From: Phallusia mammillata
Taxonomy: Eukaryota
Length of the DNA: 64,000 nt
Reading direction: 5' to 3'
NCBI GenBank assembly: GCA_965637545.1
Contig: OZ281497.1
Coordinates: 30,566,001-30,630,000, forward strand
Position 1 is the stretch's first letter; every line of letters starts with the position of its first letter. The notes beneath the pieces were generated by a model. That model saw only the letters and a program-made list of their open reading frames with translations, was not told the DNA's origin and made no database searches. This document shows positions 342 to 46,810 of the stretch, piece after piece. The position numbers and the translations under genes are program-made.

Positions 342-506
342 TTAAAACACAACTTTTCCTCGCAACTTTGATCTGATGAGATTCTTCCCTGCTTCTGTGA
401 AGTGATTGCCCCGAACATTCAACACATTAATGTTGTGAACCACTCCTGCCAATGACTCAGTACTTTCATCTGTCAGCTTGTTCCAAGATAGATGAAGAAG
501 TTCCAT
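342..506 (-). CDS. Terminal LRR exon MELLHLSWNKLTDESTESLAGVVHNINVLNVRGNHFTEAGKNLIRSKLRGKVVF*
   Basis: Acceptor tattcttgttttag|ATG, phase 0, two LRR motifs, TAA at 342-344; a diverged paralogue of the 54-aa cassette. Confidence 0.85.
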   Translation of the reverse strand: MELLHLSWNKLTDESTESLAGVVHNINVLNVRGNHFTEAGKNLIRSKLRGKVVF

Positions 507-3500
507 CTAAAACAAGAATAAGTTAAACACAAGTAACACTCTAGTATGTTGTAATAAATGGTGCAGTATGACGACATAGTACAAAATATTTTTGAGTAAA
601 AAACGGATGTCACGTGTTGTGAAGTATGAAAAATAATTAATACTATAAGAAAAAATTAACAAACAAACAACTACTGATGTGTAGATTTGCTCGGGTTGTT
701 CGTAATCACATGAAAATCACCAAATAGCATTAAGTTGCCCTATTTTAAAAGTACCATTTTTCAATTGTCGTTTAGAATGCATATAATATGTGTCAGTAAC
801 TAATAAAATCACACCACTTTATTACATCAACAATCACAAAATAAGTTAACTTAGTGTGCATTTTTTGACTCGTGACTTTGTGTTTTTTGTGCAACTTGTA
901 CTAAGTCACCACATTTTTAGGTTATTTCCTCTTTACAGTCACGCTTATCTTTCAGCTGCAGTTTTGCTGAGCAAGCTAGATAGCAGCGGCGAAATCAGGA
1001 AACTACAAAGCTTTCGCGAGAATTATTTGTTCTTTTTGTCAATTGGACGGGTAGAGAAAGCGTCAAAGTCGAAAGATAGGCCGTGTTTCGGTTTTGGTAC
1101 TTTTTGGTTTGAGCCTGCTTAGAATTTTGAACAAAGCGCTTTGCCGCTTAACACGTCGTTTTGAACCAGAAAACTAAATAGGCAACGGGGCATTTTAGTG
1201 GCATTTTGACGTGTAAATTACGTATTCAGCCGTGCGGTCTAGTTTCGTATCGTGCGGACATTTGTGTGGGAAATTTTTCAAAGCAAACTTAGGACGTATA
1301 TGACGTCATTAGGGAAATTCCCAAAAGGAAATGTTGGACGCCCCCCCAAAAATTTCTGGATACGCCCCTGCTGGTGACCGTAAATTGATTAAAACTCGTT
1401 TCCTAGACAAACGGCCTTAAAAACTGGTCTAAATGGACTTTGTGTGAATGAATAGATACTACAAGCCCAGTAGCCATCTTAACCGGATTTTTCTATACTT
1501 ATTATGTGTAAACAATTTGAATAATGAAACAAGAAACAACGTTTCGATACACATGGTGACGTCATAAAAAGTTATTACTGATAACTAAATCGTTCAGATT
1601 TAATTGATCAAAAAATAAATAAATTGGACTTTTAGCAACCAGTAGATAAGATATAATGAGATAATTCACGTTTCTTTGCATCAGCAAAATATAAATGAAA
1701 ATACCCAAATATTTGGCGGTCCTTCGTGAAATATGAACCTGTGATACGGCCACCATTGCGTAAAGGTTATGCACCTCTGCTGTGGCGTTTAAACTGAAGA
1801 CTTTCCCATCTGAATGTGACACTTTTTGCCATTAGTTATTTGTGTTGTGTGGAGTGACGTGTATTGCGAGAAAATTGCCCAACCCTGTCATGAGGTGAAT
1901 CTGACTTATTCAGAAAAATGTTATTTGATGTAGCAGGAATGGAACAGAAAGACGCACGGGTTGAAACTCATAAATCGGCACAAACTTTCATGTTTTAATG
2001 TTAAGGAGTTCGAACCTAGGATTCGCCCTGCGCGGATCAAGACGGAAGCAGAAAACATATCGTTGACATCTTACATGACGTAATTGAAGGATTTCATTAC
2101 CACCTACGTGTCTTGTTGCGTCAGATATAACCCAATATTACATAGAAAACCAAAACAAATAGTAAATCTTTGCTATAAAGCAAAAAAAATATTTTTCGCA
2201 AGGTAGAATTCAACAATATTTACCGGTTTTCTTAGCTTTTTCACTCCATCGCAGAGTTTCTTGACACCTTCACTTTCGATCTCACATCCCTCCAGTATAA
2301 GTTGTTCCATGTTGTAAAGGCAAGGACCCAGTAAAGCTGTTCCCTTGTTGTCGATCTTGTTGTGGGAGAGTTCGAGTTTCTTCAGCTTATTTTAATGCAA
2401 CAAATATTATCCCACTCATCGTAGTGACAAATTTAAGTAACTAGAACTAAACAACACAACTTGGGATTACGCCTTGTTATTAATGCTACGACTTTTTAAC
2501 ACATAATTTCTGTTAAACTTTAAATTTGGCATTTCATCAATTAAAGATAAAGTAAGACATGAAAACATGAAAATTAAGCTGTAGAATGTTCACACTATTT
2601 TTGTTAAAGAGAATTTACAAACCAATCCTGGCTTTGCTAGCTTAATGTAAGAAATATATTTATTTTAATTGCGTTGTTTAAATTCCGCGTTTAAGCGCCC
2701 TGGCCTTGCTGCTTCGATTAAATTTCACATCCGTGTGTCGAGTGATGTGGTGTTATAGCAACACACGAGTAAAAAGTATGCGCTGCACGTTTGTTTTACT
2801 ATACGTTGTTGTACGTCATGCTGAATACAAAAAAGTGTGACAAAGTTGTTTGTTAGAAACAAAATATGTGTATAAGAGACAGTGTCGCATTCAAAATTCA
2901 GATTATCGCATAATCCAGTTAATCTTCTAAGAAAGCTACGTGTATTCATTATACCAGGGCTCGGCAACCTTTTTTGCTCTGCTCTGGATTCATATGCGTA
3001 GGATTCATATTTCATAGCGACCATGGAGTCAGGATAAAAATTTTACGTTTTTATTCTGACACCGTCCTATGACATCATTAATGCATTTCTATGCTGTGTC
3101 GCTGTAGCGCAGTAGTTTCCAAACTGTGCGTCGCAACGCTCTGGTGCATCGTTTCAATTTTCCAAGGGGGTCGCAGAATAGTTCCGTTTCGTGGATTTTT
3201 GTTGTTGTATCAATAAACGCAACTTTAATAAAAAGTGTCCTCATTAATTTTAATATGCTGGTGCGTCGCAAGTCCAGAAAACTTTTCGAGAAGTATCGCA
3301 GCAAAAAAAGTTCATTTTTGGACTTTATCATTTTAGTACAGTTCGATTTAAGTACTGACAGCCCGTTATTGCTACAGAACCTAAAAAGGCCGTTATAAAA
3401 ATTGGCGAGCACGACAAACTGTTGACAAATTGGCGACAAAAAACTGTTGTCAGAAGAATAAATCTCAATTCGTATCGTCCACAATATTACACTAGTTTGA

Positions 3501-6500
3501 CATCCTAGAAAACTAAAAATGAAAACTGTGACTTATGAGGAGTTCAGGAAACGAGCCACCGCCATAGTCGCATGCAATTATACGAAGTGAAGGGTAAGGC
3601 TCCGACTGGCGAGACGCACTCAAACAGTGGATGAAACCAACCGAGATTTCGTATTAGCTCTTGTAACGCTTGGATACCAAGACAACAAACTAAGAAATAC
3701 CATCCTGTACACTTCTCTGCCTCCTGTGCTAATCGGACAAACGCCTTGCAGACTTTACCGCGTGAAAATTGCTCGAAGGAAGAACCAAACTTCAGAGATG
3801 CGCCGGGTTGAGCAATTAACGCGAACGAGTTTGTTGTTAACAGTGAAAAGACGCAGTATTAATGTTGCCCAGCTTAAACCTGAAGTAAACCTGGTCGCTG
3901 AAGAATTGAAACGCTTGGCTGAGGAAAATAAACATTTGCGGCTGGAACTAAACGATTTGAGAAATGAGACCAAACGTTTTTCCTCTCGTCTGTGCTTTCA
4001 TTGCAATGGCGATAGACATTCCGCAAGAAAATGCAGGCAAGGGAGACCACGTTCTCCTATCAGGAGTCTGGGGTAAGCTCCAGGGCACAAAAACTCATTT
4101 GACACCAACGAGAGCATGCTGTACAAATATGCCAACGTTAACTTCAATGATATTTCTTGGTTTACACTAATCGGCACTTCGCCCACTGTCAGTGTGGTGT
4201 CAAGTGTAAGAAACTTACATATGTCAAGATGGAGTCTTGCCGAATAATTCAAGAGCTAATATGTGTTTGATTTAGCGTCGCTGATATCAAAGTCACTGCA
4301 TCTGTTTATATGTTGTCGGATGTCGTCGAGGAGTGGCCTTCATCAAACGGCCACGTCGTCAGATACGACAGTCAAGATTTTATCGAGCGCCTGAATAAAT
4401 ATGCAGCCAAAGAGCCGTGTATTTTTTGAGAGATACTTAACACACCTAGTGACCCAATTTTGGGTCGCAAGACCTTCCAGTCTGGGTCGCAAATTATTTT
4501 TAAGTTTCCAAGAATATAAGCATCGCATCCATAGGCGCCGAGTTTTGCAAAAAATGCAATGTGGCGGACGTAAAATATGACGTCACTTTGTGTGACGTCA
4601 CCAATGCGGGCAACCACAAGAACTCAAAAGCCCAACAAACTTTCAATAGAATGCAACGTTCGTCAAAATCAGAAAAATACGAAATATTTGAAATAATATT
4701 CCGCTGGCAATTGCAACATGTTGCTGTAGCGTTTATCATTGGTTTAGTAACGTTTAAAAAATGTTTCGTCAAGTTGTTGCTGCTTTATATTACGTTAGAT
4801 AACAATTTATTACTACACATTTGCATTGTACAAAGTAATGGCCGAACATTCACTGACAGGCAATTGTGTGTTTGACGTCATAAACAAGGCACTAACCACA
4901 ACAGGTTGCAGTTTTAAGCCACGTTTTGTGGTTGAATCGCCATTACGCTGGTTAAAAAGCAAAATTGTTTCTAATATTCTTGAGATTTCACGATATTTCG
5001 TACGATACCGCCACGAACTAACCAAAATTTCCACAGTGGCCGCCACCGTGCTTTACAAACTCAAGGTGGTGGCGCCACCACGCCACAGCCTACTTGGCGC
5101 CTATGATCGCATCTATAGTTTTAAAGATTTTCAGCTTTTTCAACCTCCTAATTATTATTGCATTGTTACATATGACTACGTAACTGTTACATCCAGCCTT
5201 TGTAACAGTCCAACCTTTGTAGCGTTACATCCAGCCTTTGTAGCGAACATTCGGTTTGCCCAACTAATTCAGTCGAAACGAATAATTTTACAAATATGCG
5301 GTTTTGGCTGAATAATATGTTGCGTTTCAGCCCAAACCGAATATTTTACAATCACAATTTTAAAGCGTAAAACGAGTCATTTGTGCCAAAAAAAAAAACA
5401 CAATCTTCTTAAATACTATCAACTACTTGCTAATAAAACCTACCATTACGCCAACTCATACAAAACGTCAGTTATATTATCATCAGACTGGCAACTATTC
5501 TTATGCAGCAACATCATGCTTGCCAGCTGATAGTAAAGCTCTATGTTACAAGAGAATAAGGAAGCATCTGTGTCGGTGTAAACAAACGTCGTAGTAACAT
5601 AATTTCAGCTATGAAGGTGGAAATTAGAACTTCTGTTAAAAACGTGTATTGCATTCAGCTAAGCGCACAATCCAGTTAAGCGCATAATAAAGCTTGGCAT
5701 ATTCATTCCACCATTTACTGGATATTGTGCGCAGCATATATCATAGTGATCATGAATTCAGGATAAAAGTACTGCTTATATTTTTGGTAATGTAAGAAAG
5801 GGATTGAATTGTTTTGTACTACAATAAAAATCTGCCTCAGCAACATGCCCAATAGCCGCGATATTGTATAGTGTTTTTCTCAAGGAAAGCACGTGCTGCA
5901 GGCTAGAAAAATAACTTCGTGTCGTCATAGATAGTACACCGCTCTCGCGCGTTATGCGCCAAAGTCCACCCTGACCAATCATTACCCCTGGACCAACAAC
6001 ATCGGTTGAAATTCCCCCCACACACACCAGTGCATACCTAGATTTTAGTAAAACAAGTCAATTTAATGTTAAAGTTTGGATAGGTGGGAGCTAAAGAAAA
6101 GGCTAACCTGCGTCAGTTTAGGCTATGCTCAAATAGTTCCAAAGTGTTTGAGTTTAACTTGAGGGTTGCGGATTTGGTCAATTTTATTTGAAATCTGCGC
6201 GAGGGCCAGCGGATCTTGATTGCCGGCCAAATAAATATGGCGACCCTGACCTCGAACCTTCGTGTGGCTATTAGGCATGCTAGGCCGGGGAAAAATAATT
6301 TATTAGCCGGCAAATATAAACCGGATTCATTAGAGCTGAGACATAGAGTTGCACGGTGATACATAACCGTTTTTGTGAAATATAACCACATACCAAGTTT
6401 TGGAACAATCATGTTACGATTATTTTCCATTAAAACGTTCTATACTATTAATAGTGCATGTAGTATGCGAAATATTTTTTCGGGTCTTATGATTATTAAT

Positions 6501-9500
6501 AGGGATGTACCGAATATTCGGTTTGCCGAATTTATTCGGCCCAATTATTTTTGCAAAGATTCGGTAAACAAAATATTTTACGAGACCAAATTTAAAGCGT
6601 TAAATTTGTCTTTTCTGCTTATTAAGGGTACCACGCAATCTTTCAAAATCCAAAACATAACCAAAATCGCTTCAATTTTTATTTTTTCAACACATTATTG
6701 TTTTTCCCACTGTAGTAAAGAAATTAGTAATTCTTCGGCAGGTTGCCAATCATGCTTTTTTCAACGACATATGACTAAAATGAGGGTGAAAAACACAAAA
6801 ATTCTCTACTAATTGCCTGGTAGAAAAACAATTTTTCATTTAAACGCTTAGCGTAGCACTTTGCGTAACGTCATGAATGATTCGGTTGATTCGGCCAAAT
6901 TTATTCGGCAACACAACTTAGGATTACGCCTTGTTATAAATGCTACGACTTTTTAACACATAATTTCTGTTAAACTTTAAATTTGGCATTTCATCAATTA
7001 AAGATAAAGTAAGACATGAAAACTTGAAAATTAAGCTGTAGCATGTTCACACTATTTTTGTTAAAGAAAATTTACAAATCAATCCTGGCTTTTCTAGCTT
7101 AATGTAAGAAATTTATTTAGGTTAATTGCGTTGTTTAAATTCCGTGTTTATGCGCCCTGGCCTTGCTTCTTCGATTAAATTTCACATCCGTGTGTCGGGT
7201 GATGTGGACTTACTATTAAGAGTTTGAACTGAGCACTGTCAGCCCGTTATTGCAGCAGAACCAAGACATGTTTAACACATGTTTGTATCACTATGAGTTT
7301 TGCACTTGATGGTAGATCATAAAGTGACAGATCAAAAATGCCTGAACATCCTATGACGCAGCTACAGACGAATCCAGTTAATCCAATAATGTTTAGTCGC
7401 ACAATCCGTTTAGTTGCATCAAGACCGTAATCCAAAACGGTAGCTCATTTGGTTATAAAATCGCCCGGTTAATCGCACACCTCTTCAGAACATAATCTAG
7501 ATAATCGGACGGATTTTGAACAAAATATGTGACTAACTGGAAAGTGGATTTCTATGTAAATGATTTCTCAAAACACAGTAAACGTAACCCATCGCCCATG
7601 GTTTAAAAGTGTGACTTGCTGAGTGGGAGATGAGACAGGCCTCTTTATCTTTTCCTCTTTTTCTCCATTATCGTAACACTCTTTATTGCTTTCAAAAATT
7701 GTCAAAGAAAACCGTCGTGGGCAATAAGTCCGAACATCTGAATTAGGACAAAAACAACTATAAAAAAAAACTAGAAGAGTGGCTTTCTGATATACTTCCA
7801 TTTTATATATTCTATACGATATTTACCAATTAACTATACACATCATTTGATCTACACATATGATTGTTTTTGTAAACAAAAACTAATGGGTCCCCACACG
7901 CGCGTTTGTGCGGATTTACAGTAAACAAATGTTGCGGTGATTTTTACATTCTTAAGGACAAATTTTTAGAAACCATTAACCCAACAATAAAAAAAAAATT
8001 GTTCGTATTCTTTTTGCACTATGATTGTCATGTAATTACAAAATTAAAAAAACGTAACAAAGACTTAAATCTAATCTCTTGCCTTGACCCAGATATAGTC
8101 CTCCAAGGTCGGGTTTTGAACAATTTTTTTAGAAAAGCTGTAACAGTTGTGTTACAGACACTTTAAATTAAAAAGCAATTTGCTACAAGTGTATACATAA
8201 CAAATTGTTTTTCATTTAACTTTGTTTCGCAAAACGAGTACCATTAACCAGTAGTAACCTCTCAGGGTGCACACGCCAAACGACTGTTTGACCTTTTGAC
8301 ACCGTTTTCAATAGCACGCCGTCATTCGTGTTCAACAATACTGTTAAGCCTAATTCATACATGCCTTGAGTATTGACTCCTTAATTGATTGTCAAAAAAA
8401 CGCTACGTTATGAAGAAAGTTCTGAGCTGTGTTTGTAATACCGACTAGTTGACCTTAAGTAACCCGTGATCATGCGGCAGCCAACCTGACAACGAGCATT
8501 TAAAAAAACATTTATTTGGCAAAACTCAAGTTAATTTTTTCATCTTAACTTTTATTAACAAAGTTTTTCTTGACATATACAAAACCGAAGCACGGTTATT
8601 AGGTTTAAATCACGTCATAGGTGTAAAACCTTCGCCAAAACTAAAAATGTGAGTGATAACTTAATAAAACGACATAGCATTGCTGTGCAAAACAGCTGAT
8701 TTCTAATCACTGAAACGACGTCTCGTAAAACGTCTGTCCGACGTCAAGCTGAGCCCTCCCGCTATCGTAAACCAGTGAGTTACTCTCTTGGTACTTCTGC
8801 CTACAGTGTTTTTCTTGACCAAACGGGCGTTAGACACATCTATGTTTCGGGGGCCTATGGGTGAACCTCTGGGTCATACGGGGTCAAAATTCACATGGAC
8901 CATCTATAGACCAATATCTGCAATGTGTGTAAATTTGAAAAAGTTTAAACCATTCTTTCTTGACCAAAACGTGGGAATAATAGCCGCACTAAAAATTTCA
9001 CGTTTTGGGGGGCTGTGGGTGAACCGGGAGATCAAACGGGGTCAAAATTTACATGGACCATCTTTAGACCAATATCTTTAATGTGTGTAAATTTGAAAAA
9101 GTTTAAACCATTCTTTCTTGACCAAAACGTGGGAACAAATCTGCGTTAGAAAGAAAAAAAGAAAAAAGAAAAAAGAAAAAAAGAAAAAAGAAAAAAAAAA
9201 TATAGACAAAAACAATATGTGTCCCCTTCAGGGAAGGGGACCCATAACCAATCGGTTTGTGCCATATTGTAGAATGTGTGTGTATATTGCTAAATCACGA
9301 CTTTGCGCCGTTTTGTGAAAGTTGATATGCTTCTGAAAACGTAATTTTACTTACGCCATGCTACAGTAAAGGGAAAGGAAGCATCTCTGTCGACGTGAAC
9401 GGGCGTCATCTCTGTCGACGTGAACGGGCGTTTTATATTTTTCATTTGTGTTGCTGACTATTCTTGAAACACACGTTACCGATGACCCATTACATGCCAT

Positions 9501-12500
9501 CTCTGTCGGTGCAAACAAACGTCCTAGTAACGTAATTTCAGCAATGGAAGTGGAAATTAGAATTTCTGTTAAAAACGTGTATTGCATTCAGCTAAGCGCA
9601 CAATCCAGTTAATGGCATAATAAAGCTTGGCATATTGATTCCACCATTAACTGGATTCTTCTGCGCAGCACATATAATAGTGATCATTCAGGATAAAAGT
9701 ACTGCTTATATTTTTAGTAATGTAAGAAAGGGATTGAATTGTTTTGTACTGAAATAAATATCTGCCTCGGCAACATGCCCAATAGCCGCCATATTGTATA
9801 GTTTTGTCCTCAACGAAAGCACGTGCTGCAGGCTAGAAAAATAGCTTCGTGTCGTCATAGATTGTACACCGCTCTCGCGCGTTATGCGCCAAAGTCCACC
9901 CTGACCAATCATTACCCCTGGACCGACCACATCGGTTGAAATCCCCCACACACACCAGTATATACCGCGATTTTAGTAAAACAAGTCAACTTAATGTTAA
10001 AGTTTGGATAGGTGGGAGCTAAAGAAAAGGCTAACCTCCGACAGTTTAGGCTATGCTCAAATAATTCCAAAGTGTTTGAGTTTAACTTGAAGGTCGCGAA
10101 ATTGGCCAATTTTATTTGAAATCTGCGCGTGGGCCAACGGCCCTTGATTGCCGGCCACACCAAAATGCGACCCTGACCTCGAGCCTTCGTGTGGTCATTA
10201 GACATGCTAGGCCGGGTAGAAATAATTTATTAGCCGGCAAATATAAATCGGATTCATTAGAGCTGAGACATAGAGTTGCAAGGTGATACATAACCGTTTT
10301 TGTGAAACATAACCACATATCAAGTTTTGGAACAATCATGTTATGATTATTTTCCATTAAAACGTTCCATAATATTAATAGTGCTTGTAGTATGCGAAAT
10401 ATTTTTTTGGGTCTAATGAGTATTAATAGGGATGTACCGAATATTCGGTTTGCCGAATTTTTCGGCCATATCGGTCATTTTTGCAAAGATTCGGTCAACA
10501 AAATCTTTTACGAGCACAAATTTAAAGCGTTAAACGTGCCTTTTCTGCTTATTAAGGGTACCACGCAATCTTTCAAAAGCCCAAACATAACCAAAATCGC
10601 TTAAATTTTTATCTATTTCAACACATTATTGTTTTTCCCACTGTAGTAAGCAAATTAGTAATTCTTTGGCAGGTTGCCAATCATGCCTTTTTCAACCCCA
10701 TATGACTAAAATGACGACGAAACACAACCATTCTGTACTAATTTTTCCGTACCACTTTGCGTGACGTCATGAATGATTCGGTTGATTCGGCCGAATTTAT
10801 TCGGCAAAACGCCGAATATTGGGTTTCGGCGAACCGAAATTTAGACGAATCGGTAGATCACTAGGTATTAGTTTATCGCTTCCAAAACAAATAGTAAATC
10901 TTTGCTATAAAGCAAAAAAAAATATTTTTCGCAAGATAGAATTCAACAATATTTACCGGTTTTCTACGCTTTTTCACTCCATCGCAGAGTTTCTCCACGC
11001 CTTCACTTCTGATCTCACATCTAGCCAGTATAAGTTCTTCCATGTTGTGAAGGCAAGGAGCCAGTGAAGCTGTTCCCGTGTTGCCGATCTTGTTGTTGGT
11101 GAGGTCGAGTTTCTTCAGCTTATATTAATGCAACAAATATTATTACACTTATCGTAGTGACAAATTTAAGTAACTAGAACTAAACAACAAACCTTAGGAT
11201 TACGCCTTGTTATAAATGCTACGACTTTTTAACACATAATTTCTGTTAAACTTTAAATTTGGCATTTCATCAATTAAAGATAAAGTAAGACATGAAAACA
11301 CGAAAATTAAGCTGTAGAATGTTCACACTATTTTTCTTAAAAAGAATTTACAAACCAATCCTGGTTTTTCTAGCTTAATGCAACAAATTTATTTAGGTTA
11401 ATTGCGTTGTTAAAATTCCGTGTTTAAGCGCCCTGGCCTTGCTTCTTCGATTAAATTTCACATCCGTGTGTCGGGTGATGTGGTGTTATAGCAACACACG
11501 AGTAAAAAGTATGCGCTGCACGTTTGTTTCACTATAAGTTGTTGTACGTCATGCTGGATACAAAAAAGCTGTGACAAAGTTGTTTGTTAGAAACAAAATG
11601 TGTGTATAAGGGACAGTGTCGCCTTCAAAAGATTTTCTAAAGTAGATTGCTAATGTTTAAACACAACATTTGCACAACCCCAAGATCTATTGAAAATGTA
11701 ATCTACATTTTGCTCTGTGATTTAAAAGTTGATCTGGCTTTAAAGAAAATTTTCATCTGTTCTATGCTACAAAAAAAGAAAGGAAGCATCTCTGTCGACG
11801 TATACGAGCGCCGTAACGTAATTTTAGCTATGAAAGTGGAAAGTAGCACTTCTGTTAACAACGTGTGTTGCATTCAGATTATCGCATAATCCAGTTAATC
11901 GCATAAGAAAGCTAGATATATTCATTATACCAGTGCTCGCCAACCTTTTTTGCTTTGCTCTCGATTCATATGCGTAGGATTTATATTTCATAGCGACCAT
12001 GGAATCAGGATAAAAAAATTCGTTTTTCTTCTGGCACCGTCCTATGACATCATTCATGCATTTCTATGCTGTGTCGCTGTAGCGCAGTAGTTTTCAAACT
12101 GTGCGTCGCAACGCTCTGGTGCGTCGTTTCAATTTTCCAAGGGGGTCGCAGAATAGTTCCGTTTCGTGGATTTTTGTTGTTGTATCAATAAACGCAAATT
12201 TAATAAAAAGTTTCCTCATTAGCTTTTATTTGCTGGTGCGTCGCAAATTCAGAAAACTTTTCGAGAAACTTCGCAGCAAAAAAAGTTTGAGAACCACTTC
12301 TGTAGCGAATTGCCGAAGAGACATGGGCCAAGGGGCTTAGAAGCCGGCAGTTGGAGTTAGAGCCGAGAGGTGGTTGTGTCGGGACTGTTATATATGTGCT
12401 GCTTGCTTTTTATCGTTTTTAGACTTCATCATTTTATTACAGTTCGATTTGATTACTGACAGCTCGTTATTGCTACAGAACCTAAAAAGGCCGTTACAAA

Positions 12501-24500: not shown

Positions 24501-27500
24501 GCGCATGTCTATGTCATAGCAACCATGGATTCTAGTTGTTTGGATTCAGGCCAGATGCTTTGATACATTTTCCCGTGTTTCCCGGGGATTGTAAACTATT
24601 TTAGGCGTTTTTATTCCTAAATATTTGTGGTTTTTTGAAGGCCGGTCCGCGATAAAATTCAAAAACGGTCCGCAGTGCAAAAAAGGTTGCCGAACCCTGT
24701 GCTAAGTCACATACAACTACGGAATTTAGATCGCCAACTGCTTATAATGAACACACAATTTAACAAAAAATGCAAATAAACAGTTATGGTGTAAATTGAT
24801 TATTTAGTTTAAATTGTGTTGAGAAACAGGTCAAACTGCTTTGAGACGAAATGAATTTCAGTTATCAACATAACATCGTCTTTGCTGTTGCGTCACTAAT
24901 GCCCAGTAAACATATTTTATTTTTATTATGTTTTTTAATTTACCGAAGTTACGCTACAATTGTTTTGATGTCAAATTCTGCTTTAAGGTGTTTTGCGTTT
25001 ATGTTAATATTAATTAACACCACAATAAAGTTTCAACAAAGACAGAACTGCTGGGTCTTCTACCTTTTTTGTGTTGTGTGAAATTTTACTTTTGATTATT
25101 GCGACCACATTAACTTTACAGTTGATTTAATTGTGACGACAGATTTGAATGCTGTCGCAACAAAGGTATATTAGAGTGACAATCATCACCTGTAATATTT
25201 AAAAATCTTTCGCACCCAGAGCAACGATTTTAAAGCACCGGTTGTCAGTATAAAGATATCTGCAAAGAACAATTACATGCTTATAAAAATGCATTTTTTA
25301 AGATTAAATGAGGTTGAAATAAACCGGTTGCACCGTTTGTAATTATATAAAATCTTGTATATTACTTAAATCGAAATTCAACATTTTTTACCGGCTTTGT
25401 TAGCTTTTTCACTCCATCGCAGAGTTTCTCGACACCTTCACTTCCGATCCCACATCCCCACAGTATAAGTTGTTCCATATTTTGAAGGCAAGGAGCCAGC
25501 GAAACTGCTCCCGTGTTGCCGATCTTGTTGTAGGAGAGGTCGAGTCTCTTCAGCTGATTTTAATACAACAAATATCATCATGTTTATCGTAGTGACGAAT
25601 GCTAGTAAATCAAAATAGACAAACCAACACAAATTCTGATTACGCCTTGTTATAAATGCTGCGACTTTTCATTGACGGATTTAATTAAAACCTGCCATCA
25701 GATTTTTGTTTTTTCTGAAGCTTGTGCTTTGCCAAACATTCCTTATATCGTTGAAGCATATTGTTATATTTTTTCATTTTGCAAACCCGCCAAAATCGTT
25801 GCTCTTATGAAAATACACCTAAAGCGAGCGTTCGCTGTTTATTTTGTGAAGATCAAAAACAGAATGATTCCCAACGCGCGACAAACATGAAAGACACAAT
25901 TAAGACGCTTCGCCAGTCGCGGGCCTGTAGAGACGCCACACAACTTCCCCCAGAAGTTGGATAAGCACAAATATAACGATACTTATATTTCCCACAGCAC
26001 AAACTTCCGCGAGGTTTATATGCGTAGTGTGAGTTGTGATTTGCTATTTTACAATTCGTAATTTAAGTTGATGTTGTCGACAAATAAAAGACGACACAAA
26101 GACAAAATCCAATGAACTAAGCTGGTCAACCAAAACTTGCCCCGTGTTTTATTTTTTGATTTTTTCAATTATTTTTATGTTTATTTTACATTGGTTTAAT
26201 TTCTTTGTACTTTTGGTTATTTATGCTTTTGTCATTCATATCTTATTGTACTAATAACATGATTTTCCTGCTAGGTTTCTTTTCCCGTCAAACCCCACCT
26301 TCTTTCCCTAATACGGGTGGCTGGCATATAGTGCCCACTCAACTGGTCCCACCAAGTTTCCTCCACTATTTAACGTTGTGCGCAAAATTGTATGTTTTTC
26401 GGGCCCGCCTTTCCACTTGTTTATATTTACCCTTATATTTATATGATATATACAGCGATGTTTACTTCTCAGCCTGTAACGACCCCATTATATACTGAAA
26501 CATGTAACCATCAATTTCAGCCAGCCAAACGCACAAGTAAAGTTTTTACCCGACATGCGTGCTTGGTAATGATTGGATATTAGTCATGTGACATTTTATT
26601 GAATTTCCTTTTATAAATGGTTGTAAACGTGGTGATATAGAGTGTCGCAGTTGTGCTGTTTATAAACGTTGAAGTTACGCAGTTTTGCCTTGATTTTAAT
26701 TGTTTAGATATGCATAAGGTTGTTTACAGTTGAAACCCTGTTTGTTGTGACCATCTCACCGCTTTCTCGTTGCCAACAATAGCCGCATTCGAATACAAAG
26801 GCTAATAAATGTTTATGTTAGCGTTGCTGATATCAAAACCTCGGCTTCTGTTTATGTGTCGTTGGATGTGGTCGAGAAGTGTATTTTGTAACACTGTGTG
26901 GTTAAATACAAGTTGATGACGCGCCCCGGAAATGATGGGACAGTGCCCTTGTTACCCAAACCATGGATTTTACTGATTCCTCACTAGTGATCGAGAGAAA
27001 CATCGAAGCGTGTTTAACGATATTGCAGTAAGTCGCAAACAAACAGTGTTTGGGGAATGATGAACACCAAATGCTGCTTAGCAAACTACGTTTTTCCAGA
27101 TGTCATTGCAAAAACAAGAAAATGACGCAATCTAACAAGTACTTGCAAAACACTGTGTTTCGTTTGCAGTTGCATCAGATTGTCTTGTCTTTTTTTAAAC
27201 TCCACTTAATATAGATACTGGACAATCGGCTACTATTCTACAACACCCTTGGCGAACGGCCACATCGTCAGACATGACAGCCAGAATTTTATCCAGCGCC
27301 CGAATAGATATGCAACCAAGGACGGAGTTTAAGCGCAATAAATTGGTGCTGTGTCTTGACACATGTATGATATATGCTTTTACATAATATCGTGTTGTTT
27401 GTTTCATTTTAGTTCTCCGCAGACGAATCCAGTTAATCCAATACTGGGTAATCGCCCAATCCGTTTAATTGCATACAGATGGTGAATCCTAAACTGTAGC

Positions 27501-30500
27501 TAATTAAAACATCGACTGGTTAATCGCATACCTTTTAATAGCATATTCCGTATATTTGCATAAAAAGGATTGGTATATTGATTTTGCGAATAACCGGATT
27601 ATGCCATTAACTGAGTCGTCTGTACAGCATATGTCATAGGGACCAAGGATTTTAAATTCTTGGATATATAGCTGACTAGTTTTCGCTGCAAAGACATTGA
27701 ATATATACTGTTAGCCAGTGTGTCAGTGTTTGTAATTGTTAATCCTGTAGAATAAAGTGAATACTGCTCTGTACAGATCTAAATACGTGAGTTAGGTAAA
27801 ATTACATTTACAATTTTATGGTGTGTCACAAACCACTCATTTTTACATACAAAAGCGGTTTGTTACTCAGTTATACTGGTAACATTTTTTACCACTATGT
27901 GGTTTGCATCGCTTCTTCCAATATATCAGTCAACACTATTATAGTTTTTTATGCTCATGTTTGTATCATGCAAAACATTTATTTTGCTTTCTCGCGTTTT
28001 GTGATTTTGCTTCGCAAATAGTTTACCGTTTCTCAAACAGATGTGTTTGTTGTTAAAAAATTCTCTCAACACATATTTCAACAACTTTTACCGGCTTTGT
28101 CAGCTTTTTCACTCCATCGCAGAGTTTCTTTACGCCTACACTTCCGAACTCACATCCACGCAGTATAAGTTCTTCCATGTTGTGAAGGCAAGGAGCGAGA
28201 GAAGCTGCTCCCCTGTTGCCGATCTTGTTGCAGGAGAGGTCGAATATCTTCAGCTGATTTGTTTACAATAAATATTATCACATTTATCAGAGTGACCAAT
28301 GCTAGTAAATGAAAATAGATAAACCACAGTGACTTCGGATTACTCTTTGCTATAAATGCTACGACTTTTCATTGCCCGGATTTATTTAAAAAACCTGCAT
28401 CAGATTTGCATTTTTCCGGATGCTTGTGCTTTGCCAAACATTGCTTATTTCGTTGGCTCATATTGTTGTAATATTTTCATTTTGTAAACCCGCCGAAATC
28501 GTTGCTTTGAACAAAATACACCTAAGGCGAGCGTTCGCTGTTTGTTTGTTGAAGAACAAAAATAAAATGATTCCAAACGTGCGACAAACATGAAAGGCAC
28601 AATTAAGACGCTTAGCCAGTCGCGGGTCTATAGATTTGCTACACAACTTCCTCCCAGAAACGGGTGAAACACAAGTATAACGATACTTATATTTCCCACA
28701 GCACAAACATCCGCAAGATTTATATGCTTTGTGTGAATTTTTTGATTTGCTATTTTACAATTCGTAGTTTAAGTTTATGTTGTCCACAAATAAAAGACGA
28801 CACAAAGACAAAATCCAATGAACTAAGCTGGCCACCAAAACTTGCGCTGTGTTTTATTTTTTGAATTTTTTAATTATCTTTATGTTTATTTTACATTGCT
28901 TTAATTTCTTTTTACCTTTGTTATTTATGCTTTCGTCATTCATATCTTAGTGTACTAATAACATGATTTGTTCCTAAATGTTTTTCTAAACTATAGTTTG
29001 CATGTTTGTTTGCTTTTTCGGACAAGTCGGTTAGTTTGGTTTGGACCTAGTGCCAGGTTTAAGTTTCAATGAAACAGGCTAGATTCGGGTCTGTAGAACA
29101 AAGTGATTAATGCTTTGTACAGATCTAAATATGTGAGTTAGGTAAAATTACATTTACATTTTTATGGTGTGTCACATACCACCCATTTTTACATACAAAA
29201 GATTTTTACGGTTCGTTACTCAATAATACTGGTGTCATTTGGTTACCACTGTGTGGCTTGCATCGCTTTTTCCAATAAATCAGTCCATACTATTACAGGC
29301 CCACTTTGAGAGTTGATCTGGTTCTGAGAAAGTAATTTTATTTACGCCATACTACAAAAAAGAGAAAGGAAGCACCTCTGTCGCGTAAACGGGCGTCGTA
29401 GTAACGTCATTTTAGCTGTGGAAATTAGTACTTCTGTTCAGAACGTGTTTTCCATCCAGATTTTCGCATAATTCACTTAATCGCACCAGTGTAGCGACTT
29501 TACTGCCGTGTTCGCTTATGCGCATCGAAACGTGCTATTTGCCGTTTTCTTTTAATCGCCATTGCCTCGTATAAAGGCAGGTTTCGCGTTGCTCTATCTC
29601 TTACACGCTACAACATAACTCGGACATGACGCCACTGCTCAATAAAGATTCGACCGCTTCACAAGAAATCTTTGTATAATGATTATGTGATGAAGTTGAT
29701 TCATATGCGCAGCATCTGTTATAGCAACCATGGATTCAAGATAAAAACATGTGCTGTTTATATTTCCAATTATAGAAAAAAATGGTTAAATTGCTTTCTA
29801 CTCAAATAAATATCAGTCAATCAACAGAACATTTCATTTTCAGTTTTACATCTACACAACAGATACCAGGTCGTATTCGCAAGTTAAGTAAAGTTACATT
29901 TAAACGTTTCTTCTTGTGGCGTCACATGCTAAGTCAGGTCCGCGAGTAGTTTGGTTTCAGGCCAGATGCTTTGATACATTTTCCCGTGTTTCCCGGGGAT
30001 TGTAAACTAATTTAGGCTTTTATATTCCTAAATATTTGTAGTTTTTTGAAGGCCGGTCCGCGATAAAATTCCAATTTCAAAAACGGTCCGAACTGCAAAA
30101 AGGTTGCCGACCCCTGTGCTAAGTCACATACAATTACGGAATTTAGATGACCAACTGCTTATAAAGAACAGAGTTATGGCGTAAAGTTGATTGTTTAGTT
30201 TAAATTGTGTTGAGAAACAGGTCAAACTGCTTTGAGACGAAATAAATTTCATTCATTCAACATAACATTGTCTTTTCTGTTGCGTCACTTATCCCCACCA
30301 ATCATATTTATTTTTATTATGTTTTTTAATTTACCGAAGTTACGCTACAATTGTTTTGATGCCAAATTCTGCTTTAAAGCGATTTGCGTTTATGTTAATA
30401 TTAATTAACACCACAACAAATTTTCAATGAAGACAGAACTGCTGGGTCTTCGACCTTTTTTGTTGTGTGAATTTTTACTTTTGATTATTGTGACCACATA

Positions 30501-33500
30501 ATCTTTACAGTTGATTTAATTGTGACGACATATTTGAATTCTGACGCAACAAAGGTATATTAGAGTGACAATCATCACTTTCAATATTTAAAAATCATTC
30601 GCACCCAAAGCAACTATTTTAAAGCGCCAGTTGTCAGTATAAAAATATCTGCAAAAAACATTTACATGGTTATAAAAATGCATTTTTTTAGATTAAACGA
30701 AGTTGAAATAACCAGGTTGCCACGTTTGTAATTGGATAAAATCTTGTATATCACTTAGATCGAAATTCAATATTTTTTACCGGCTTTGTTAGCTTTTTCA
30801 CTCCATCGCAGAGTTTCTCGACACCTTTGCTTCCGATCCCACATTCATCCAGTATAAGTTGTTCTTCGATGTTGTGAAGGCAAGGACCCAGTAAAGCTGC
30901 TCCCGTGTTTCCGATCTCGTTGCCGGAGAGGTCAAGTATCTTCAGCTGATTTAATGCAACAAATATGATCATATTTATCGTAGTGACGAATGCTAGTAAA
31001 TCAAAATAGACAAACCAACACAACTTCGGATTACGCCTTGCTATAAATGCTACGACTTTTCATGGACGGATTTAATTAAAACCTGCAATCAGATTTGTAT
31101 TTTTTCTGATGCTTGTGTTTTGCCAAACATCGCTTATTTCGTTGGCGCATATTATATTTTTTTTCATTTGTAAACCCGCCGAAATCGTTGCTTATATACC
31201 TAAGGCGAGCGTTCCCTGTTTAATTGGTGAAGATCAAAAATAGAATGATTCCAAACGCGCGACAAACATGAAAGGCACAATTAAGACGCTTCGTAAGTAG
31301 CGGGCCTGTAGAGAAGTATAGGTTATGAACTAATAAATAAATATTACAGACTGACAGGTGTGACAAGATGGCAGATATACAAGTTGGATATGTGAATGAA
31401 TTTCAATAAATATTCGTATATTGTCACCAAGACACAGATATATAGACAACACGATTCTACTTCTGCTACAGACATATAATCGACAATCGGTACACATGGC
31501 GATTCTACATATTGGCTCAAGTTGCATTAATACTTTGGTCTGTTGTGACACTTGCAAAATCGCATACGAATATTGTTATTTTCTTTCTGTATTGTGCACC
31601 CTGACTGTTTTCAGTTTTACTTTTTAGGTCATGCTTTGACTTTCAACAGTTTTGTTTTGTCTGTTTATTTGCGGACGTTATATGTTTTAATGCATTTGTT
31701 CTTGCTCTTGTGTATATCGAACTTAACAGTTTTATGTGGACAATTTCACATTTCACTTTATTTTCCACGCCCTTCTTTGTTTATATTTACCCTTATATTT
31801 ATATGATATATACAGCTATGTTTACTTTTCAGCCTGTAACGACACCATTATATACCGAAACATGTTACCATCACTTTCAGCCAGCCTAACGCACAAGTAA
31901 AGTTTTTACCCGACATGCGTGCTTGGTAATGATTGGACGTTAGTCATGTGACGTTTTATTGAATTTCCTTTTATAAATGGTTTTAAACGTGGTGATATAG
32001 AGTGTAGAATTGTGCTGTTTGCAAACGTTGAAGTTACGCAGTTGTGCCTTGATTTTAATTGTTTATATTTGTGTAAGGTTGTTTACAGTTGAAACCCTGT
32101 TTGGTGTGACCATCTCACCGCTTTGTTGGCGCCAACAGTAGCCGCATTCGAATGGAAGGGCTAATAAATGTTTATTTTAGCGTTGCTGGAATGAAAATCT
32201 CTGCTTCTGTTTATGTGGTCGGATGTCGTCGAGAAGTGCATTTTTAACACTGTGTGGTTAAATACAAGTTGATGACGCGGTCCGGAAATGATGGGGCAGT
32301 GTCCTTGTTACCTAAACCATGGACTGATTCCTCAGTAGTGATCGAGAGAACCATGGAAGCGTGTTTTAACGATGTTGCAGTAAGTCGCAAGCAAATAGTG
32401 TTTGGGGAATGATGAACACCAAAAGCTTCGATTTTCCAGATGTCTTTGCAAAAACAAGAAAATGACAAAATCTAACAAGTTATTGCAAAACATCGTGCTG
32501 CGTTTGCAGTTGCGTCAGAGTATCTTGGCCGTTTTTTAACTACACTTAATATAGTTTGACTCCTATTCTGCAACACCCTTGACGAACGGCCACTTCGTCA
32601 GATACGACAGCCAAAATTTTATACAGCGCCGAAAATAGATATGCACCGAAGGACAGTGTTTAAGCGCAATACATTGGTGCTGTTTCTTGACACATGTATG
32701 ATATATGCTTTAACATAATATTGTTTTGTTGTATGTTTTGTTTTAGTTCTACGCAGACGAATCCAGGTAATCCAATACTGGATAATCGCCCAATCCGTTT
32801 TATTGCATAGAGATGGTGAATCCTAAACCGTAGCTAATTAAAAAATCGACTGGTTAATCGCATACCTTTTAATAGCATAACCCGTATATTTGCATAAAAA
32901 GGATTGGCATATTGATTTTGCGAATAACTGGATTATGCCAATAACTGGAGTTGTCTGTACAGCATATGTCATAGGGACCAAAGATTTTAAATTCTTAGAT
33001 ATATAGCTGACTAGTTTTCGCTGCAAAAACAGTGAATATATACTGTTAGCCAGTGTGTCAGTGTTTATAATTGTCAATCTTGTAGAAAAAAGTTACTACT
33101 GCTTTGTACAGATTTAAATATATGAGTTAGGTAAAATTACAATTACATTTTCATGGTGTGTCACACACCACCCATTTTTACATACAAAAGCAGTTTGTTA
33201 CTCAATAATACTGGTGTCATTTGATTACCACTGTGTGGCTTGCATTGCTTCTTCCAATAAATCGATCTATACTGTTATAGTTTTTTTATGCACATGTTTT
33301 TATTTTGCTTTGTAATTTTGCTTTGGCGCAAATAGTTTACCGTTTCTCAAACAGATATGTTTGCTGTTAAAATATTCACACAACATATATTTCAACAAAC
33401 TTTACCGGCTTTGTTAGCTTTTTCACTCCATCGCAGAGTTTCTCGACGCCTTCACTTTCGATCCCACATGCAATCAGTATAAGTTGTTCCATGTTGTGAA

Positions 33501-36500
33501 GGCAAGGACTCAGCGAAGCTGCTTCCGTGCTGCCGATCTCGTTGAAGGAGAGGTCGAGTATCTTCAGCTTATTTTAATACAATAAATATTATCACATTTA
33601 TCGTAGTGACGAATGCAAGCAAATAAAAATAGATAACACAACACTACATTTGATCAGATTACGCTTTGATATACAGTGTTGTAAATGTTGCAATTTGTTT
33701 AATCCCAAAAAAATAAACTCAACCCTGATTTAACTCAAACTAATAATTATTTTCAAACGATTCACAGTGGTGCATTTGCGTAGCAATTGTTTGATGGACG
33801 TTTCTGACAGAACATTTTTTATATCATTGCATGCAAATGTAGCGAAATTTTATTTGCTTGTTAGTTTTTGTCACTTATTGTTTTCGTTCTTTTTCGTTGT
33901 GGCACCTTCATTACGTTTTTGTGTTGTGGCACCCTCGCTGCTTCCCCTTAGGAGTGATTAGGTATGAAAGCGTTGATTGCGCCGGAATATGCCTTCCTGT
34001 TCCGCATGCCTTAAATAGGGCGTCACTAGTTGATGGTATGGCTTTTCTCTGGGCGCCGTGAAACTTAGTGATGTTGGTAATGGTATTGGTGGTGGGTTGC
34101 CACGTGCCCAGTGTAACGTCGTCGTTTTTACATTGTTTTAAATATAAGTCGCGCCCATAAGCTAGTGTGAGGGAGTATAATTGGCTTTAGTGGTGAGCCG
34201 TTATTGCAGGGTTCTGGACCTAAGCAGGTTTGGTGCATAAGATCGAGTTAGCAGGCCTGCCGAAATAATTCCGTAACAAATTGGCGAGCACGTCAGGACC
34301 CTGTCACCACAACACCGCTGTTTTAGTTTAAGAGAGAAGCCGGTTTCCGTTCGTTTTAGTTTGTTTTCGCTCATGTGTTGTATTAACGATGTTTTTTAAT
34401 GTAATGATGAAATCTCCGCGTTATGGTGGAGATTTAGGTTTGCGTAATTTTACCGTGGTGCTGGCGACCTACTGTCGCGATGTTGGAGCTCCAGAAGGAC
34501 ACAGGACCAAGTTGTTACTTGATCTGGTTTCAGACGAGCAGTTGGCTTATTTTCGACGGGCGACGCCCTGTTCTGAAGTCAGCTATGAAGATTACAAGCG
34601 ACTCGCCATGTGGGGTTGGTTGCAGACGTTTGGTGAAGGGCTTCGGGCCCATGTCGCTTCACCAAACTTGATGCCGGTGCTAGTCGACGGAAAATCCAGA
34701 CGAATCGCTTCTCCTGATATATGCAAGGGGTCAGAAAATGAGTCCCATTAATTCGAAGAATCTATTCGACGAGCCGGTTGCTCTTTTTCTGCGTTTTCGC
34801 AAAGTGCATTTGGTATTTTTGTGACTGTGTGTTTTTTGGAAACACCTCTTGCGCCCATTAATAAGAGACGCATGAGTCGGAAACGCTGTGTTTGCAAACC
34901 TATGTTGTTGTGCAACAACCCCGTTATGGCCAAAAGTTTGTATTCCAGGCCGATATGATGTTTTGACTGTTGATGGCGCTGAACTGCTCTGTGTGCACTT
35001 TTAGAGCTGCTAACTGAAGTTTGCTTAATCCTACGGGAGTAGGACGAATTCAGGTTGAGGGGAATGTAGCGAATTTTTATTTTGCTAGTTTTGTCACCGT
35101 CACTTATTGTGTTCGTTGTGGCACCTTAATTACGTTTTTGTGTTCTGCCCCCCTCGCTGCTTCCCCCTTAGGAGTGATCAGGTGTGAAAGCGTTGATTGC
35201 GCCGGAATGTGCCTTACTGTTCCGCATGCCTTAAATAGGGCGTCACTAGTCGATGATATGGCTTTTCTCTGGGCGCCGTGAAACTTAGTGTTGGTGTTGG
35301 TATTGGTGGTGGGTTGCCACGTGTCCAGTGTAACGTCGTCATTTTTACATTGTTTTGAATATAAGTGACGCCCATAAGCAAAACCAGCGTGAGGAAGTAT
35401 AATTGGCTTTAGTGGTGATCCGTTATTGCAGGGTTCTGGACCGGTTACGAATTAAGTAAGCAGGCTTGGTGCATAAGATCGATTTATCAGGCCTGCCAAA
35501 ATATTAGGTAACAAATTGGCGAGCACGCCAGGACCCTGTCACCACAACACCGCTGTTTCAGTTTGTGAGAAAAGCCGGTTTCAGTTCGATTTAGTTTGTT
35601 TTCGTTTATGTGATGTTTTTTAATGTAATGATGAAATCTCCGCGTTATTGCCGAGATTTAGGTTTGCATAATTTTACCACGGTGCTGGCGACCTACTGTC
35701 GCGATGTTGGAGCTCCAGAAGGACACAGGACCAAGTTGTTACTTGATCTGGTGTCAGACGAGCAGCTGGCTTATTTTCGACGGTCGACGCCCTGTTCTGA
35801 AGTCAGCTACACTGTAAATGCTAAAGATGGATTTGTGTTAGGTGGATTTTTTTTCCACCCTTTTTCGTAGGTTGTATCTTTTATATGTACCTTTCCGGGC
35901 ATATTTTACTCCTTTTGCCTTTACATTAAAGGTGGAATATGGTTTTTTTCCCCGTTGTGCCAGTTTCGTGGTCAACATTGTTTCTTACCGGGCGTAGCCC
36001 AACTAAATTACACTTTGTGCGTAAATTAACTTATTTGATTGTTGTTTACTGTTTTTTTATTCAGTAGTTTTGTAAAAGGCGTTGGAATAAAACGGCCGCC
36101 ACCACACCAATGCTCAACTACTGCGCATGCGCGCTTGCATTTTGTAGACCAGGTTGCTGCGAAAAACACGCGTTTGAGTTTGTAGTCTGTGTGTTTATCT
36201 ATGCTAATCAGGTAATGCTGTGCAGTCAGACAGTAAGAAGTTTAATCCGAAGTTTCTTAAAACAAAACGGTTTGTATATGCTGTGTTTAAATTGTCTTTG
36301 TTGACACGTTCTAATGCCCAGTGCAGCTATGCAGTGTTACTACTGAAGATTTCTAAAGTGCCGGGTTACATTACAATATTTGTTGTTTGGAATACGAAAC
36401 TATGGTGTATGGAAAAACGCATATTTGTCATAAGTTGGACATTAGTATGTTACCTACTGCATTAGTTATTTTTGTTTTTTAATTTTTGGAGATGTTTTTT

Positions 36501-45375: not shown

Positions 45376-46293
45376 CTGTCAACAAATATATTTAAGATTA
45401 GGATTGCTTGTCATTAGTTTAGGTTTATTAACGAATTGCCATAAGCATCCAGTTGACAAACGCAAGTGTAATTAAGGTTTCACAGTTTTGCCATAAAATA
45501 ATACTGTGGTCAAAAACATCAATCTCAGTTCATCACCCACCACGCTTTGAAATAGGAGGGAACTTTAAGCATTTTTGGCAAGTTCTAAATGCTTTTGCCA
45601 AACGACGCAGTTAAGTGCCACGCGCTTCGAGCAAGTTTGCCGAAAGTTTTGATTTCTGACATGAAACAAGCCAAAGGCAATAACTTGTACAGGGGTAATT
45701 ATAAACACTTGAAGACATTTAAGTTCAATGTTAACCAACCATTTTTTGAACCTAGCTTCGATATGGACATAATTGATAAATTGCGTAATGAGTTTCAAAA
45801 CGTTGGTAAGAACAGGCAGAATTCAAACCAGTGTGCTTTTAACATGGAAAAACGTTTTACAAATCATTGGGAGGAGTATCACCTCAAATCGGACACACAT
45901 CTTCAGAGATTAGTTGCATGTGATGTGCAACAAGCTCGAGATGTCGTGTGTGCCGAAAGTAGACGAGTCGTGTCAAGGAGGAAAGACTCCACCTCTTCCA
46001 CATCCAGGCCATCAAAAACGGCCTGCACCTCGGAGGGCACCGGACAGGAGTTCTACAACACTCAACACCACGAAGACAAGAGTGCTGCATCTCGAGTGCA
46101 GTTAAGCCTCGTGGTTCCCGTGGTGTTGAGGTGAGCGCTTATGAGGTTAAACCTCGTGGTCCCCGTTGTGTTGAGGTGGGTGACCATTAGATGCATCCTT
46201 CTAGTCCCAGTTGTTGCGGTGGGGGCACCCAAATTGTATCGCTTTGGTACCCGTGTTGCATAAGCGCTCACCGCACAGCGCAACAACTAGAAT

Positions 46294-46810
46294 GATGCAT
46301 CTCAAGAGCAACCACACTCAACACAAAGGGGGGCAGAGTGATGCATCTCAAGTGCAGCCACACTCAACACAATAGAGGCCAGAGTGATGCATCTCAAGTG
46401 CAGCCACACTCAACACAAAGGGGGACAGAGTGATACATCTCAAGTGCAGCCACACTCAACACAAATGAGGCCAGAGTGATGTATCTCAAGTGCAGCCACA
46501 CTCAACACAATAGAGGCCAGAGTGATGCATCTCAAGTGCAGCCACACTCAACACCAAGGAAGCCAGAGTAATGCATCTCAAGTGCAGCCACACTCAACAC
46601 AATAGAGGCCAGAGTGATGCATCTCAAGTGCAGCCACACTCAACACCAAGGAAGCCAGAATAATGCATCTCAAGTGCAGCCACACTCAACACAAAGGAGG
46701 CCAGAGTGATGCATCTCAAGTGAAGCCACACTCAACACAAAGGAAGCCAGAGTAATGCATCTCAAGTGCCGCCACACTCAACACAAAGTGGGACAGAGTG
46801 ATACATCGTA
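46294..46810 (+). repeat. 46-bp minisatellite, about 11 copies (GATGCATCTCAAGTGCAGCCACACTCAACACAATAGAGGCCAGAGT)
   Basis: Unit starts at 46294, 46340, 46386 ... 46800 with exact 46-bp period. Confidence 0.92.

Follow-up and report, generated by a model that had tools for sequence, protein, structure and literature searches.

Evidence for diversifying selection at a few codons of the tandem leucine-rich repeat exons in a predicted NACHT receptor gene of Phallusia mammillata

Eight similar exons on the minus strand of contig OZ281497.1 of the ascidian Phallusia mammillata (GenBank assembly GCA_965637545.1) probably encode consecutive, in-frame leucine-rich repeat (LRR) modules of one NLR-type receptor gene, and these modules appear to be positively selected at only a few sites. 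The stretch analyzed, hereafter the window, is 64,000 nucleotides (nt) long (positions 30,566,001 to 30,630,000 of the forward strand), and coordinates given below without a contig name refer to it. A single 11-exon NACHT-LRR gene is predicted on the minus strand of the window, from 42468 to 342, with all exons in phase 0 and a product of 1,232 residues. We refer to its eight similar exons as cassettes c8 to c1, in the order of transcription. A note made from the letters of the window, hereafter the sequence-only reading, had proposed that variation among the cassettes is focused on residues facing a ligand, around an invariant 25-nt block.

Each cassette exon encodes a 28-residue and a 26-residue repeat of the ribonuclease inhibitor (RI) type (Pfam LRR_6), and the 54-residue unit follows the pattern LKxLDLSxNKIGNTGAASLAPCLHNMEQ + LILxxCxIxSEGVEKLCDGVKKLTKP. 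The eight modules are 85–93% identical to one another and differ at 7–15% of their bases; 114 of the 162 columns in their alignment are invariant, spread evenly over the three codon positions. From c8 to c1, codon 3 reads AAA/AAA/ACA/ATA/AGA/ATA/ATA/ATA (K, T, I, R) and codon 8 reads CAC/AAC/AAC/CAC/TAC/TGC/GGC/TTC (H, N, Y, C, G, F), with changes in both confined to the first and second positions. Codon 32 specifies, in the same order, E, A, R, Y, W, R, D, and I, seven different residues in all, and codon 33 specifies G, R, E, or A. Every one of these codon states had been listed correctly in the sequence-only reading, and the same four codons have the highest amino-acid entropy among 72 unique intact cassettes of the genome, with 18 residues found at codon 32, 14 at codon 8, 13 at codon 33, and 11 at codon 3; codons 35, 28, and 37 come next. 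This genomic sample came from 50 loci, which yielded 88 copies, 74 of them intact 162-nt exons with AG/GT splice sites and 72 of these unique. Separately, at position 33524 (codon 15 of c8) a DNA sequencing run of another sample has C for T in nearly all of its depth, an allelic difference that turns Glu into the family-consensus Gly at a moderately variable codon.

Both tests of selection were run only on exons outside the window. As the four codons had been picked from the window, the choice of sites is independent of the exons on which they were tested. In the pairwise test, 12 disjoint exon pairs were matched by their distal intron sequence, 150–400 nt away from the exon, and divergence was then counted in the exon and the proximal intron. 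Distal sequence was used for matching because pairs picked by the flanks that serve as their own neutral reference are biased. Non-synonymous (pN) and synonymous (pS) divergence were 0.325 and 0.074 at codons 3, 8, 32, and 33, compared with 0.017 and 0.087 at the core codons 43–50 that contain most of the 25-nt block, 0.055 and 0.092 at the other 42 codons, and 0.070 and 0.091 for the whole exon; divergence of the proximal introns was 0.069. The four-codon pN exceeds the whole-exon pS 3.6-fold (Fisher p 2e-9) and the intron divergence 4.7-fold (p 2e-15). Seven codons, holding 13% of the bases, account for about half of the exon differences in flank-matched pairs, and the remaining 141 nt of the exon diverge about as much as the flanks and introns. 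Inside the window, among c1–c4, introns are 3–7% diverged and exons 9–12%.

The second test was a maximum-likelihood analysis of 65 exons under the GY94 codon model with three edge-linked partitions. The four codons had an estimated ratio of non-synonymous to synonymous rates (omega) of 10.2, the core one of 0.43, and the remaining codons one of 0.56; a likelihood-ratio test rejected omega = 1 for the four codons (2dlnL = 33.2, p = 6e-8). Diversifying selection at the variable codons, which the sequence-only reading had suspected, is thus upheld by two lines of evidence: an omega well above the rejected value of 1, and a pN above both pS and the intron rate. Exposed loop residues of LRRs are often under weak constraint, and exon-wide pN/pS is high here (about 0.7–0.8), so that the variable codons might be thought merely unconstrained or mutation-prone, through relaxed selection or mutational hot spots. 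However, relaxed constraint or a hot spot cannot explain a non-synonymous rate several times the neutral one with third positions spared: the third positions of codons 3 and 8 are fixed while the first and second change, unlike the pattern of a local hot spot. Given also the excess over both the synonymous and the intron rate and the rejection of omega = 1, we consider this alternative to selection very improbable.

The predicted fold places the variable codons on the side of the module from which RI binds its ligands. The AlphaFold2 model made from the alignment of the 72 exons (predicted local distance difference test, pLDDT, 94.8) has strands at residues 3–5 and 28–30 and helices at 13–23 and 38–48. 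In this model codons 3 and 28 belong to strands, and the loops after the strands contain codons 8, 32, 33, 35, and 37. The 25-nt block (codons 43–50) encodes the C-terminal half of helix 2, which lies on the outer side. The nearest folds found by Foldseek are the LRRs of NOD2, NLRP1, NLRC4, NLRP3, and ribonuclease inhibitor (template-modeling score about 0.72–0.75); every top match is an RI-type LRR, and the E-values are weak (best 0.02) because the query has only 54 residues. The family profile matches porcine ribonuclease inhibitor at E 2e-14 and NOD2 at 5e-14. In the profile alignment codons 30 and 32 fall on both tryptophans of the RI motif LWLWEC, and codon 32 also falls on the Tyr of ..LVLY in the last repeat; with an inferred offset of +3 from the porcine chain to human numbering, codons 30, 32, 33, and 35 would correspond to RI residues Trp261, Trp263/Tyr434, Asp435, and Tyr437. 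The RNase-binding regions of RI are its Trp-rich area and residues 434–438 (PMC2134966). The earlier assignment of the variable residues to the concave face therefore needs adjusting in one respect: their placement on the ligand side holds in both the model and the RI alignment, while the exact site is the C-terminal end of the strand and the ascending loop.

Taken together, these observations suggest a mechanism in which the modules would stem from tandem duplication of exon-plus-intron units. After duplication, a few positions would be driven to change, chiefly codons 3, 8, 32, and 33 and less strongly 28, 35, and 37, and the rest of each module would be held by purifying selection, because the hydrophobic core and outer helices are built from it. 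The outcome would be a germline repertoire of LRR surfaces that differ in binding specificity.

Several features of the gene model place the cassettes in an NLR-type receptor. The open reading frame (ORF) of exon 2 (40143–42212, minus strand) matches the Pfam NACHT domain PF05729 (E 5e-18, residues 237–407), contains the Walker A motif GQAGIGKT of a P-loop NACHT NTPase, and has weak matches to NLRC4_HD2 and NOD2_WH. The exon is 70% identical to P. mammillata COS1.5, its more distant matches being Clavelina proteins annotated as NLRP3-like, and exon 1 has a tblastn match to the N-terminus of the same Phallusia protein, COS1.5 (P0001). Each cassette has a polypyrimidine tract and AG, an open frame of 162 nt (165 in c7), and then GTAAA, and the cassettes share the form of their exon ending (..KP/gtaaa, the slash marking the exon–intron boundary) with the NACHT exon (..REKP/gtaaca). 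An AATAAA signal lies at 269, 72 nt downstream of the stop codon. A family hidden Markov model (HMM) run over the window found no additional cassette-like exon between the NACHT exon and c8, and none on the plus strand.

Sequencing runs that resemble RNA are consistent with this model. These runs hold 24–36% of the sampled words of the NACHT exon, and over 28000–33700 their coverage is restricted to exon-containing bins and one repeat. One RNA-like contig joins 33406, a cassette end, to 33567, a cassette start, a cassette-to-cassette splice at the predicted boundaries. The short RNA-like contigs show that family members are spliced as predicted, and the exact isoforms of the window gene lie beyond them. 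Two other RNA-like contigs were set aside as paralogues: each continues from the end of a cassette into an LRR exon (first residues MERLSLSGEE.. and MKRLNLSYNC.., respectively) that is absent from the window. The eight cassettes could in principle be used alternatively, skipped or chosen in a mutually exclusive manner, to give many isoforms from one gene: all exons are in phase 0 and a multiple of three in length, so any cassette skip keeps the reading frame, and their splice flanks are nearly identical. No skipping joint was seen, however, in the short RNA-like contigs, which cannot show rare isoforms, and the sole informative contig fits sequential splicing from cassette end to cassette start; we judge alternative use to be quite unlikely.

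A number of points weigh against the reading of the eight exons as modules of one positively selected receptor gene. Trees built from 162-nt exons have poor resolution, and paralogues may have recombined; either can inflate site-wise omega. The 72 unique cassettes were sampled from at least 164 candidates. The splice from the NACHT exon to c8 is predicted from their strand, phase, and common ..KP/gtaa exon end, and the runs that support splicing are only guessed to be RNA, with short contigs that may derive from paralogues. The assignment of the variable residues to the ligand side is based on modeled secondary structure and the RI alignment rather than on side-chain orientation, and binding of ligands by the variable surface, whether microbial or other non-self, is likewise inferred. 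Finally, Pfam detects no N-terminal effector domain (CARD, PYD, death, or BIR) in the first ~230 residues of the exon-2 ORF. Known effector domains are missing from many invertebrate NLRs, and the absence here is compatible with membership in the NLRs in the broad sense. The parts of the predicted gene and the repeats that contain them are listed in Table 1.

Table 1. Predicted exons of the NACHT-LRR gene and associated repeats in the window (positions in the window; a slash in a splice site marks the exon–intron boundary)
Feature	Position	Strand	Description
Exon 1	42262..42468	-	207 nt, 69 codons; ATG at 42468; donor ..TTG/gtaagt; N-terminal region without an assigned domain
Exon 2	40179..42206	-	2028 nt, 676 codons; NACHT NTPase with helical and winged-helix parts; end ..REKP/gtaaca
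c8, first LRR exon	33406..33567	-	54 codons, two LRRs; family HMM E 1e-33; LRR_6
c7	30781..30945	-	165 nt; one additional codon after codon 26; family HMM
c6	28092..28253	-	Cassette exon, 162 nt; family HMM
c5	25392..25553	-	Cassette exon, 162 nt; family HMM
c4	19518..19679	-	Cassette exon, 162 nt; family HMM
c3	16292..16453	-	Cassette exon, 162 nt; of the cassettes, nearest to the family consensus; family HMM; LRR_6
c2	10957..11118	-	Cassette exon, 162 nt; family HMM
c1, last cassette	2224..2385	-	162 nt; family HMM; LRR_6
Terminal exon	342..506	-	Diverged 54-codon LRR unit and stop (344-342); family HMM E 7e-6; weak LRR_6
25-mer, example copy	16303..16327	-	Codons 43-50 plus 1 nt; encodes KLCDGVKK in the C-terminal half of helix 2
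Tandem repeat units carrying c1-c4 and introns	2150..22684		About 3.2-8.7 kb, 89-93% identical; self-BLAST
Duplicated two-exon unit, c5+c6 and c7+c8	24534..33673		About 5.3-5.4 kb apart, ~87% identical; self-BLAST

The 25-nt block is a second conspicuous property of the cassettes. The window contains eight exact copies of this 25-mer, all on the minus strand (at 2235, 10968, 16303, 19529, 25403, 28103, 30792, and 33417), where none is expected by chance (100 shuffles); the exact count agrees with the claim of the sequence-only reading that the block is identical in all eight exons. It lies within the longest invariant run of the alignment, 27 nt (P about 0.001–0.003 with columns or codons shuffled). 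The invariance holds only within the window: genome-wide there are at least 95 copies, 36 exact and 59 with 1–3 mismatches, both synonymous and non-synonymous. Synonymous variants of the core found elsewhere in the genome include TGC/TGT and GTG/GTA, and in the 12 pairs its synonymous divergence of 0.087 does not differ from the 0.092 of the other codons (Fisher p = 1.0), with the core omega lying slightly under that of the remaining codons. Strong constraint on the peptide KLCDGVKK, plus eight synonymous positions that by chance have not changed, accounts for the identity across the window. Conservation of the 25-mer acts at the protein level and is explained by purifying selection on the second helix, with no separate role evident for the sequence as DNA.

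Two such roles can be weighed against these figures. The block might be kept as an RNA or DNA signal: it could act as an exonic splicing enhancer, for instance, or let a small RNA co-regulate the family by targeting it. It is purine-rich, it lies 11–35 nt from the donor site, all 8 of its core third positions are invariant in the window (vs 30/46 outside the core), and a conserved region of the LRR exons of Ectocarpus is a microRNA target (PMC3341825). Genome-wide, however, the core shows no reduction in synonymous rate, and eight invariant third positions out of eight have a probability of ~0.03 ((30/46)^8), unremarkable after scanning; we regard a signal of this kind as most improbable. The other role, proposed in the sequence-only reading, was that the block favors gene conversion or unequal crossover. 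This proposal found no support, as the synonymous rate of the core is not reduced, the pairwise homoplasy index (PHI) test found no recombination signal (distance-dependent homoplasy) within the cassette exon (p = 0.8), and only 36 of at least 95 copies are exact. With a core synonymous rate equal to that elsewhere and a negative PHI result, neither a conversion-promoting nor an RNA-level role of the 25-mer is supported.

A broader form of this idea is that concerted evolution, through conversion or unequal crossover, keeps the scaffold of the cassettes uniform and spreads their variants, with the 25-mer as the homology block that seeds exchange. The tandem units within the gene (Table 1) show that the array was made by unequal exchange; judged from these repeats, such exchange would certainly have built it. 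Moreover, cassettes with unalignable introns share an island of ~275–315 nt (the exon, ~100 nt upstream, and ~40 nt downstream), the genealogies of exons and flanks are discordant (the flank-nearest partner has a median rank of 8/67 by exon distance), and c3 differs at only 2/141 positions from an exon on another contig. Against this, exons close to the consensus are alike in any case, and the discordance of c3 fits rate variation (8 changes, at most 2 vs at least 6; binomial P about 0.15). The equal synonymous divergence of core and other codons, the synonymous variation of the core genome-wide, and the PHI result also speak against seeding by the 25-mer, and because the non-hypervariable bases of the exon diverge like the flanks, conversion is not needed to explain them. 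We think concerted evolution of this form unlikely, although cassettes may exchange some sequence, and prefer duplication followed by selection at few codons and purifying selection on the remainder of the module.

The window gene belongs to a very large, clustered, and apparently undescribed NLR family. At least 64 NACHT exons (scored among 375 first-look candidates) are 60–74% identical to COS1.5, which itself is encoded on the same contig as the window, C4, at 28709697-28711517 (100% identity). Most of these exons form a super-cluster of ~5 Mb on contig C4, at about 25.3–30.6 Mb, and others lie on contig C3 at 6.0–7.3, 11.4–11.9, and 18.5–18.9 Mb. For the cassette exon, the genome contains at least 164 candidates. 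Paralogous arrays also contain frameshifted pseudo-exons, 161 or 163 nt long, with their splice sites retained (L037, C3:18905866; L042, C4:28612108; L035, C3:11388275). No paper on an NLR expansion in Phallusia was found in the literature searched, the coverage of which was limited, so the expansion may still have been reported. A more far-reaching possibility is that hundreds of NLRs trade their exon-modular cassettes from locus to locus, through unequal crossover or conversion and perhaps also exon skipping, giving Phallusia, and in view of the similar pattern in Clavelina also ascidians more widely, a germline repertoire like that of plant R genes. We hold this to be a speculative and rather doubtful extension; if true, the reshuffled repertoire would provide individual-specific receptor sets for pathogen recognition or for ascidian self/non-self discrimination.

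Other features of the window were recorded alongside the gene. GC-rich tandem arrays span 46289–49307 (46-bp units x 11 at 46289–46807; 45-bp units x about 52 at 46957–49281) and contain long ORFs on both strands with a 15-residue periodicity, the minus-strand reading being rich in proline, glycine, and glutamine and loosely like the N-terminal region of COS1.5. A plus-strand ORF of 131–161 residues recurs in three cassette introns (4826–5311, 14047–14532, and 22297–22692), within the tandem repeat unit, and could represent a nested gene or what remains of a transposon. On the minus strand at 61211–62390, ORFs with a reverse-transcriptase-like motif (..GGWRACGDYRRLN..) suggest a pol fragment of a long terminal repeat (LTR) retrotransposon. 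Pfam gave no significant match for the intronic ORFs or the ORF of the 45-bp array, and none at E <= 0.01 for the ORF at 61211–61831. Perfect two-copy direct repeats of 25 bp (CATCTCTGTCGACGTGAACGGGCG..) lie at 9382–9431 and 23831–23879, at equivalent places in two introns.

Among known systems, the closest in fold and sequence are the animal NLRs (NOD2, NLRP1, NLRP3, and NLRC4), which, like the Phallusia gene, combine a NACHT domain with subsequent RI-type LRRs encoded as two repeats per symmetric exon. The Phallusia gene differs in that its repeat pair is 28 + 26 rather than 28 + 29 residues, no CARD, PYD, or death domain is detected, its modules are 85–93% identical to each other, and its family is hugely expanded in one cluster. 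Ribonuclease inhibitor itself (1dfj, 2bnh, and 1a4y) shares the A/B repeat pair, and codons 30, 32, 33, and 35 fall on its RNase-contact residues (PMC2134966); unlike the Phallusia gene, RI consists of LRRs on their own, binds one conserved class of ligand, and is not a diversified family. The 54-residue register recurs in a Clavelina NLR (P0018), whose six units vary at only 11/54 positions (3, 5, 7, 8, 27, 30, 32, 33, 35, 38, and 46); the pattern is therefore common to distant ascidians.

Large families with focused variation have also been described in zebrafish, fungi, brown algae, and plants. The zebrafish NLR-B30.2 (NLR-C) family resembles the Phallusia family as a set of hundreds of clustered chordate NLR paralogues on one chromosome arm, shaped by gene duplication and exon modularity (PMC4852459). 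Its LRRs, however, are reported to be not particularly variable, with positive selection found in the added B30.2 domain (PMC4852459), whereas the Phallusia gene has no B30.2 and its selected sites lie in the LRRs. The fungal NACHT-WD genes (HNWD, het-d/het-e) likewise consist of near-identical units with four positively selected interaction-surface positions each (PMC1805685), but their units are WD40 repeats within a single exon that have been shown to evolve in concert and to be polymorphic in number, and those of Phallusia are LRRs in separate exons. In the brown alga Ectocarpus, ROCO and NB-ARC genes have one module per exon, expanded families, and diversifying selection on the concave face (omega about 3.5–5.9; PMC3341825). 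Each of those exons encodes a single 24-residue LRR, and shuffled and reverse-strand pseudo-exons occur in the introns (PMC3341825); the family HMM found no intronic or plus-strand pseudo-cassettes of this type in the Phallusia window. The LRRs of plant NLRs and R genes share hypervariable, positively selected, solvent-exposed xxLxLxx residues and clustered paralogues (PMC8226289, PMC3782705), and differ in having NB-ARC instead of NACHT, 24-residue plant-type LRRs, another exon structure, and an independent origin. Somatic assembly of the lamprey VLR type, in which donor cassettes that lack splice sites are copied into an incomplete germline gene, does not fit, as the cassettes are ordinary AG/GT exons within a NACHT gene that is complete; no sign of somatic change was seen, though none was looked for.

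Direct ligand binding by the LRRs of animal NLRs is still a matter of debate. Strong positive selection at the very LRR positions that RI uses for its ligands argues for direct, diversified recognition by LRRs. Receptor diversification at few sites of copied repeats is already familiar from plants, fungi, and brown algae, and the data presented here are good support for it in an invertebrate chordate, where positive selection is focused on the LRRs as opposed to the B30.2 domain of zebrafish, the best-studied expanded chordate family. With compact modules of 54 residues and about seven variable sites, the Phallusia family is well suited to studying how LRR specificity evolves.

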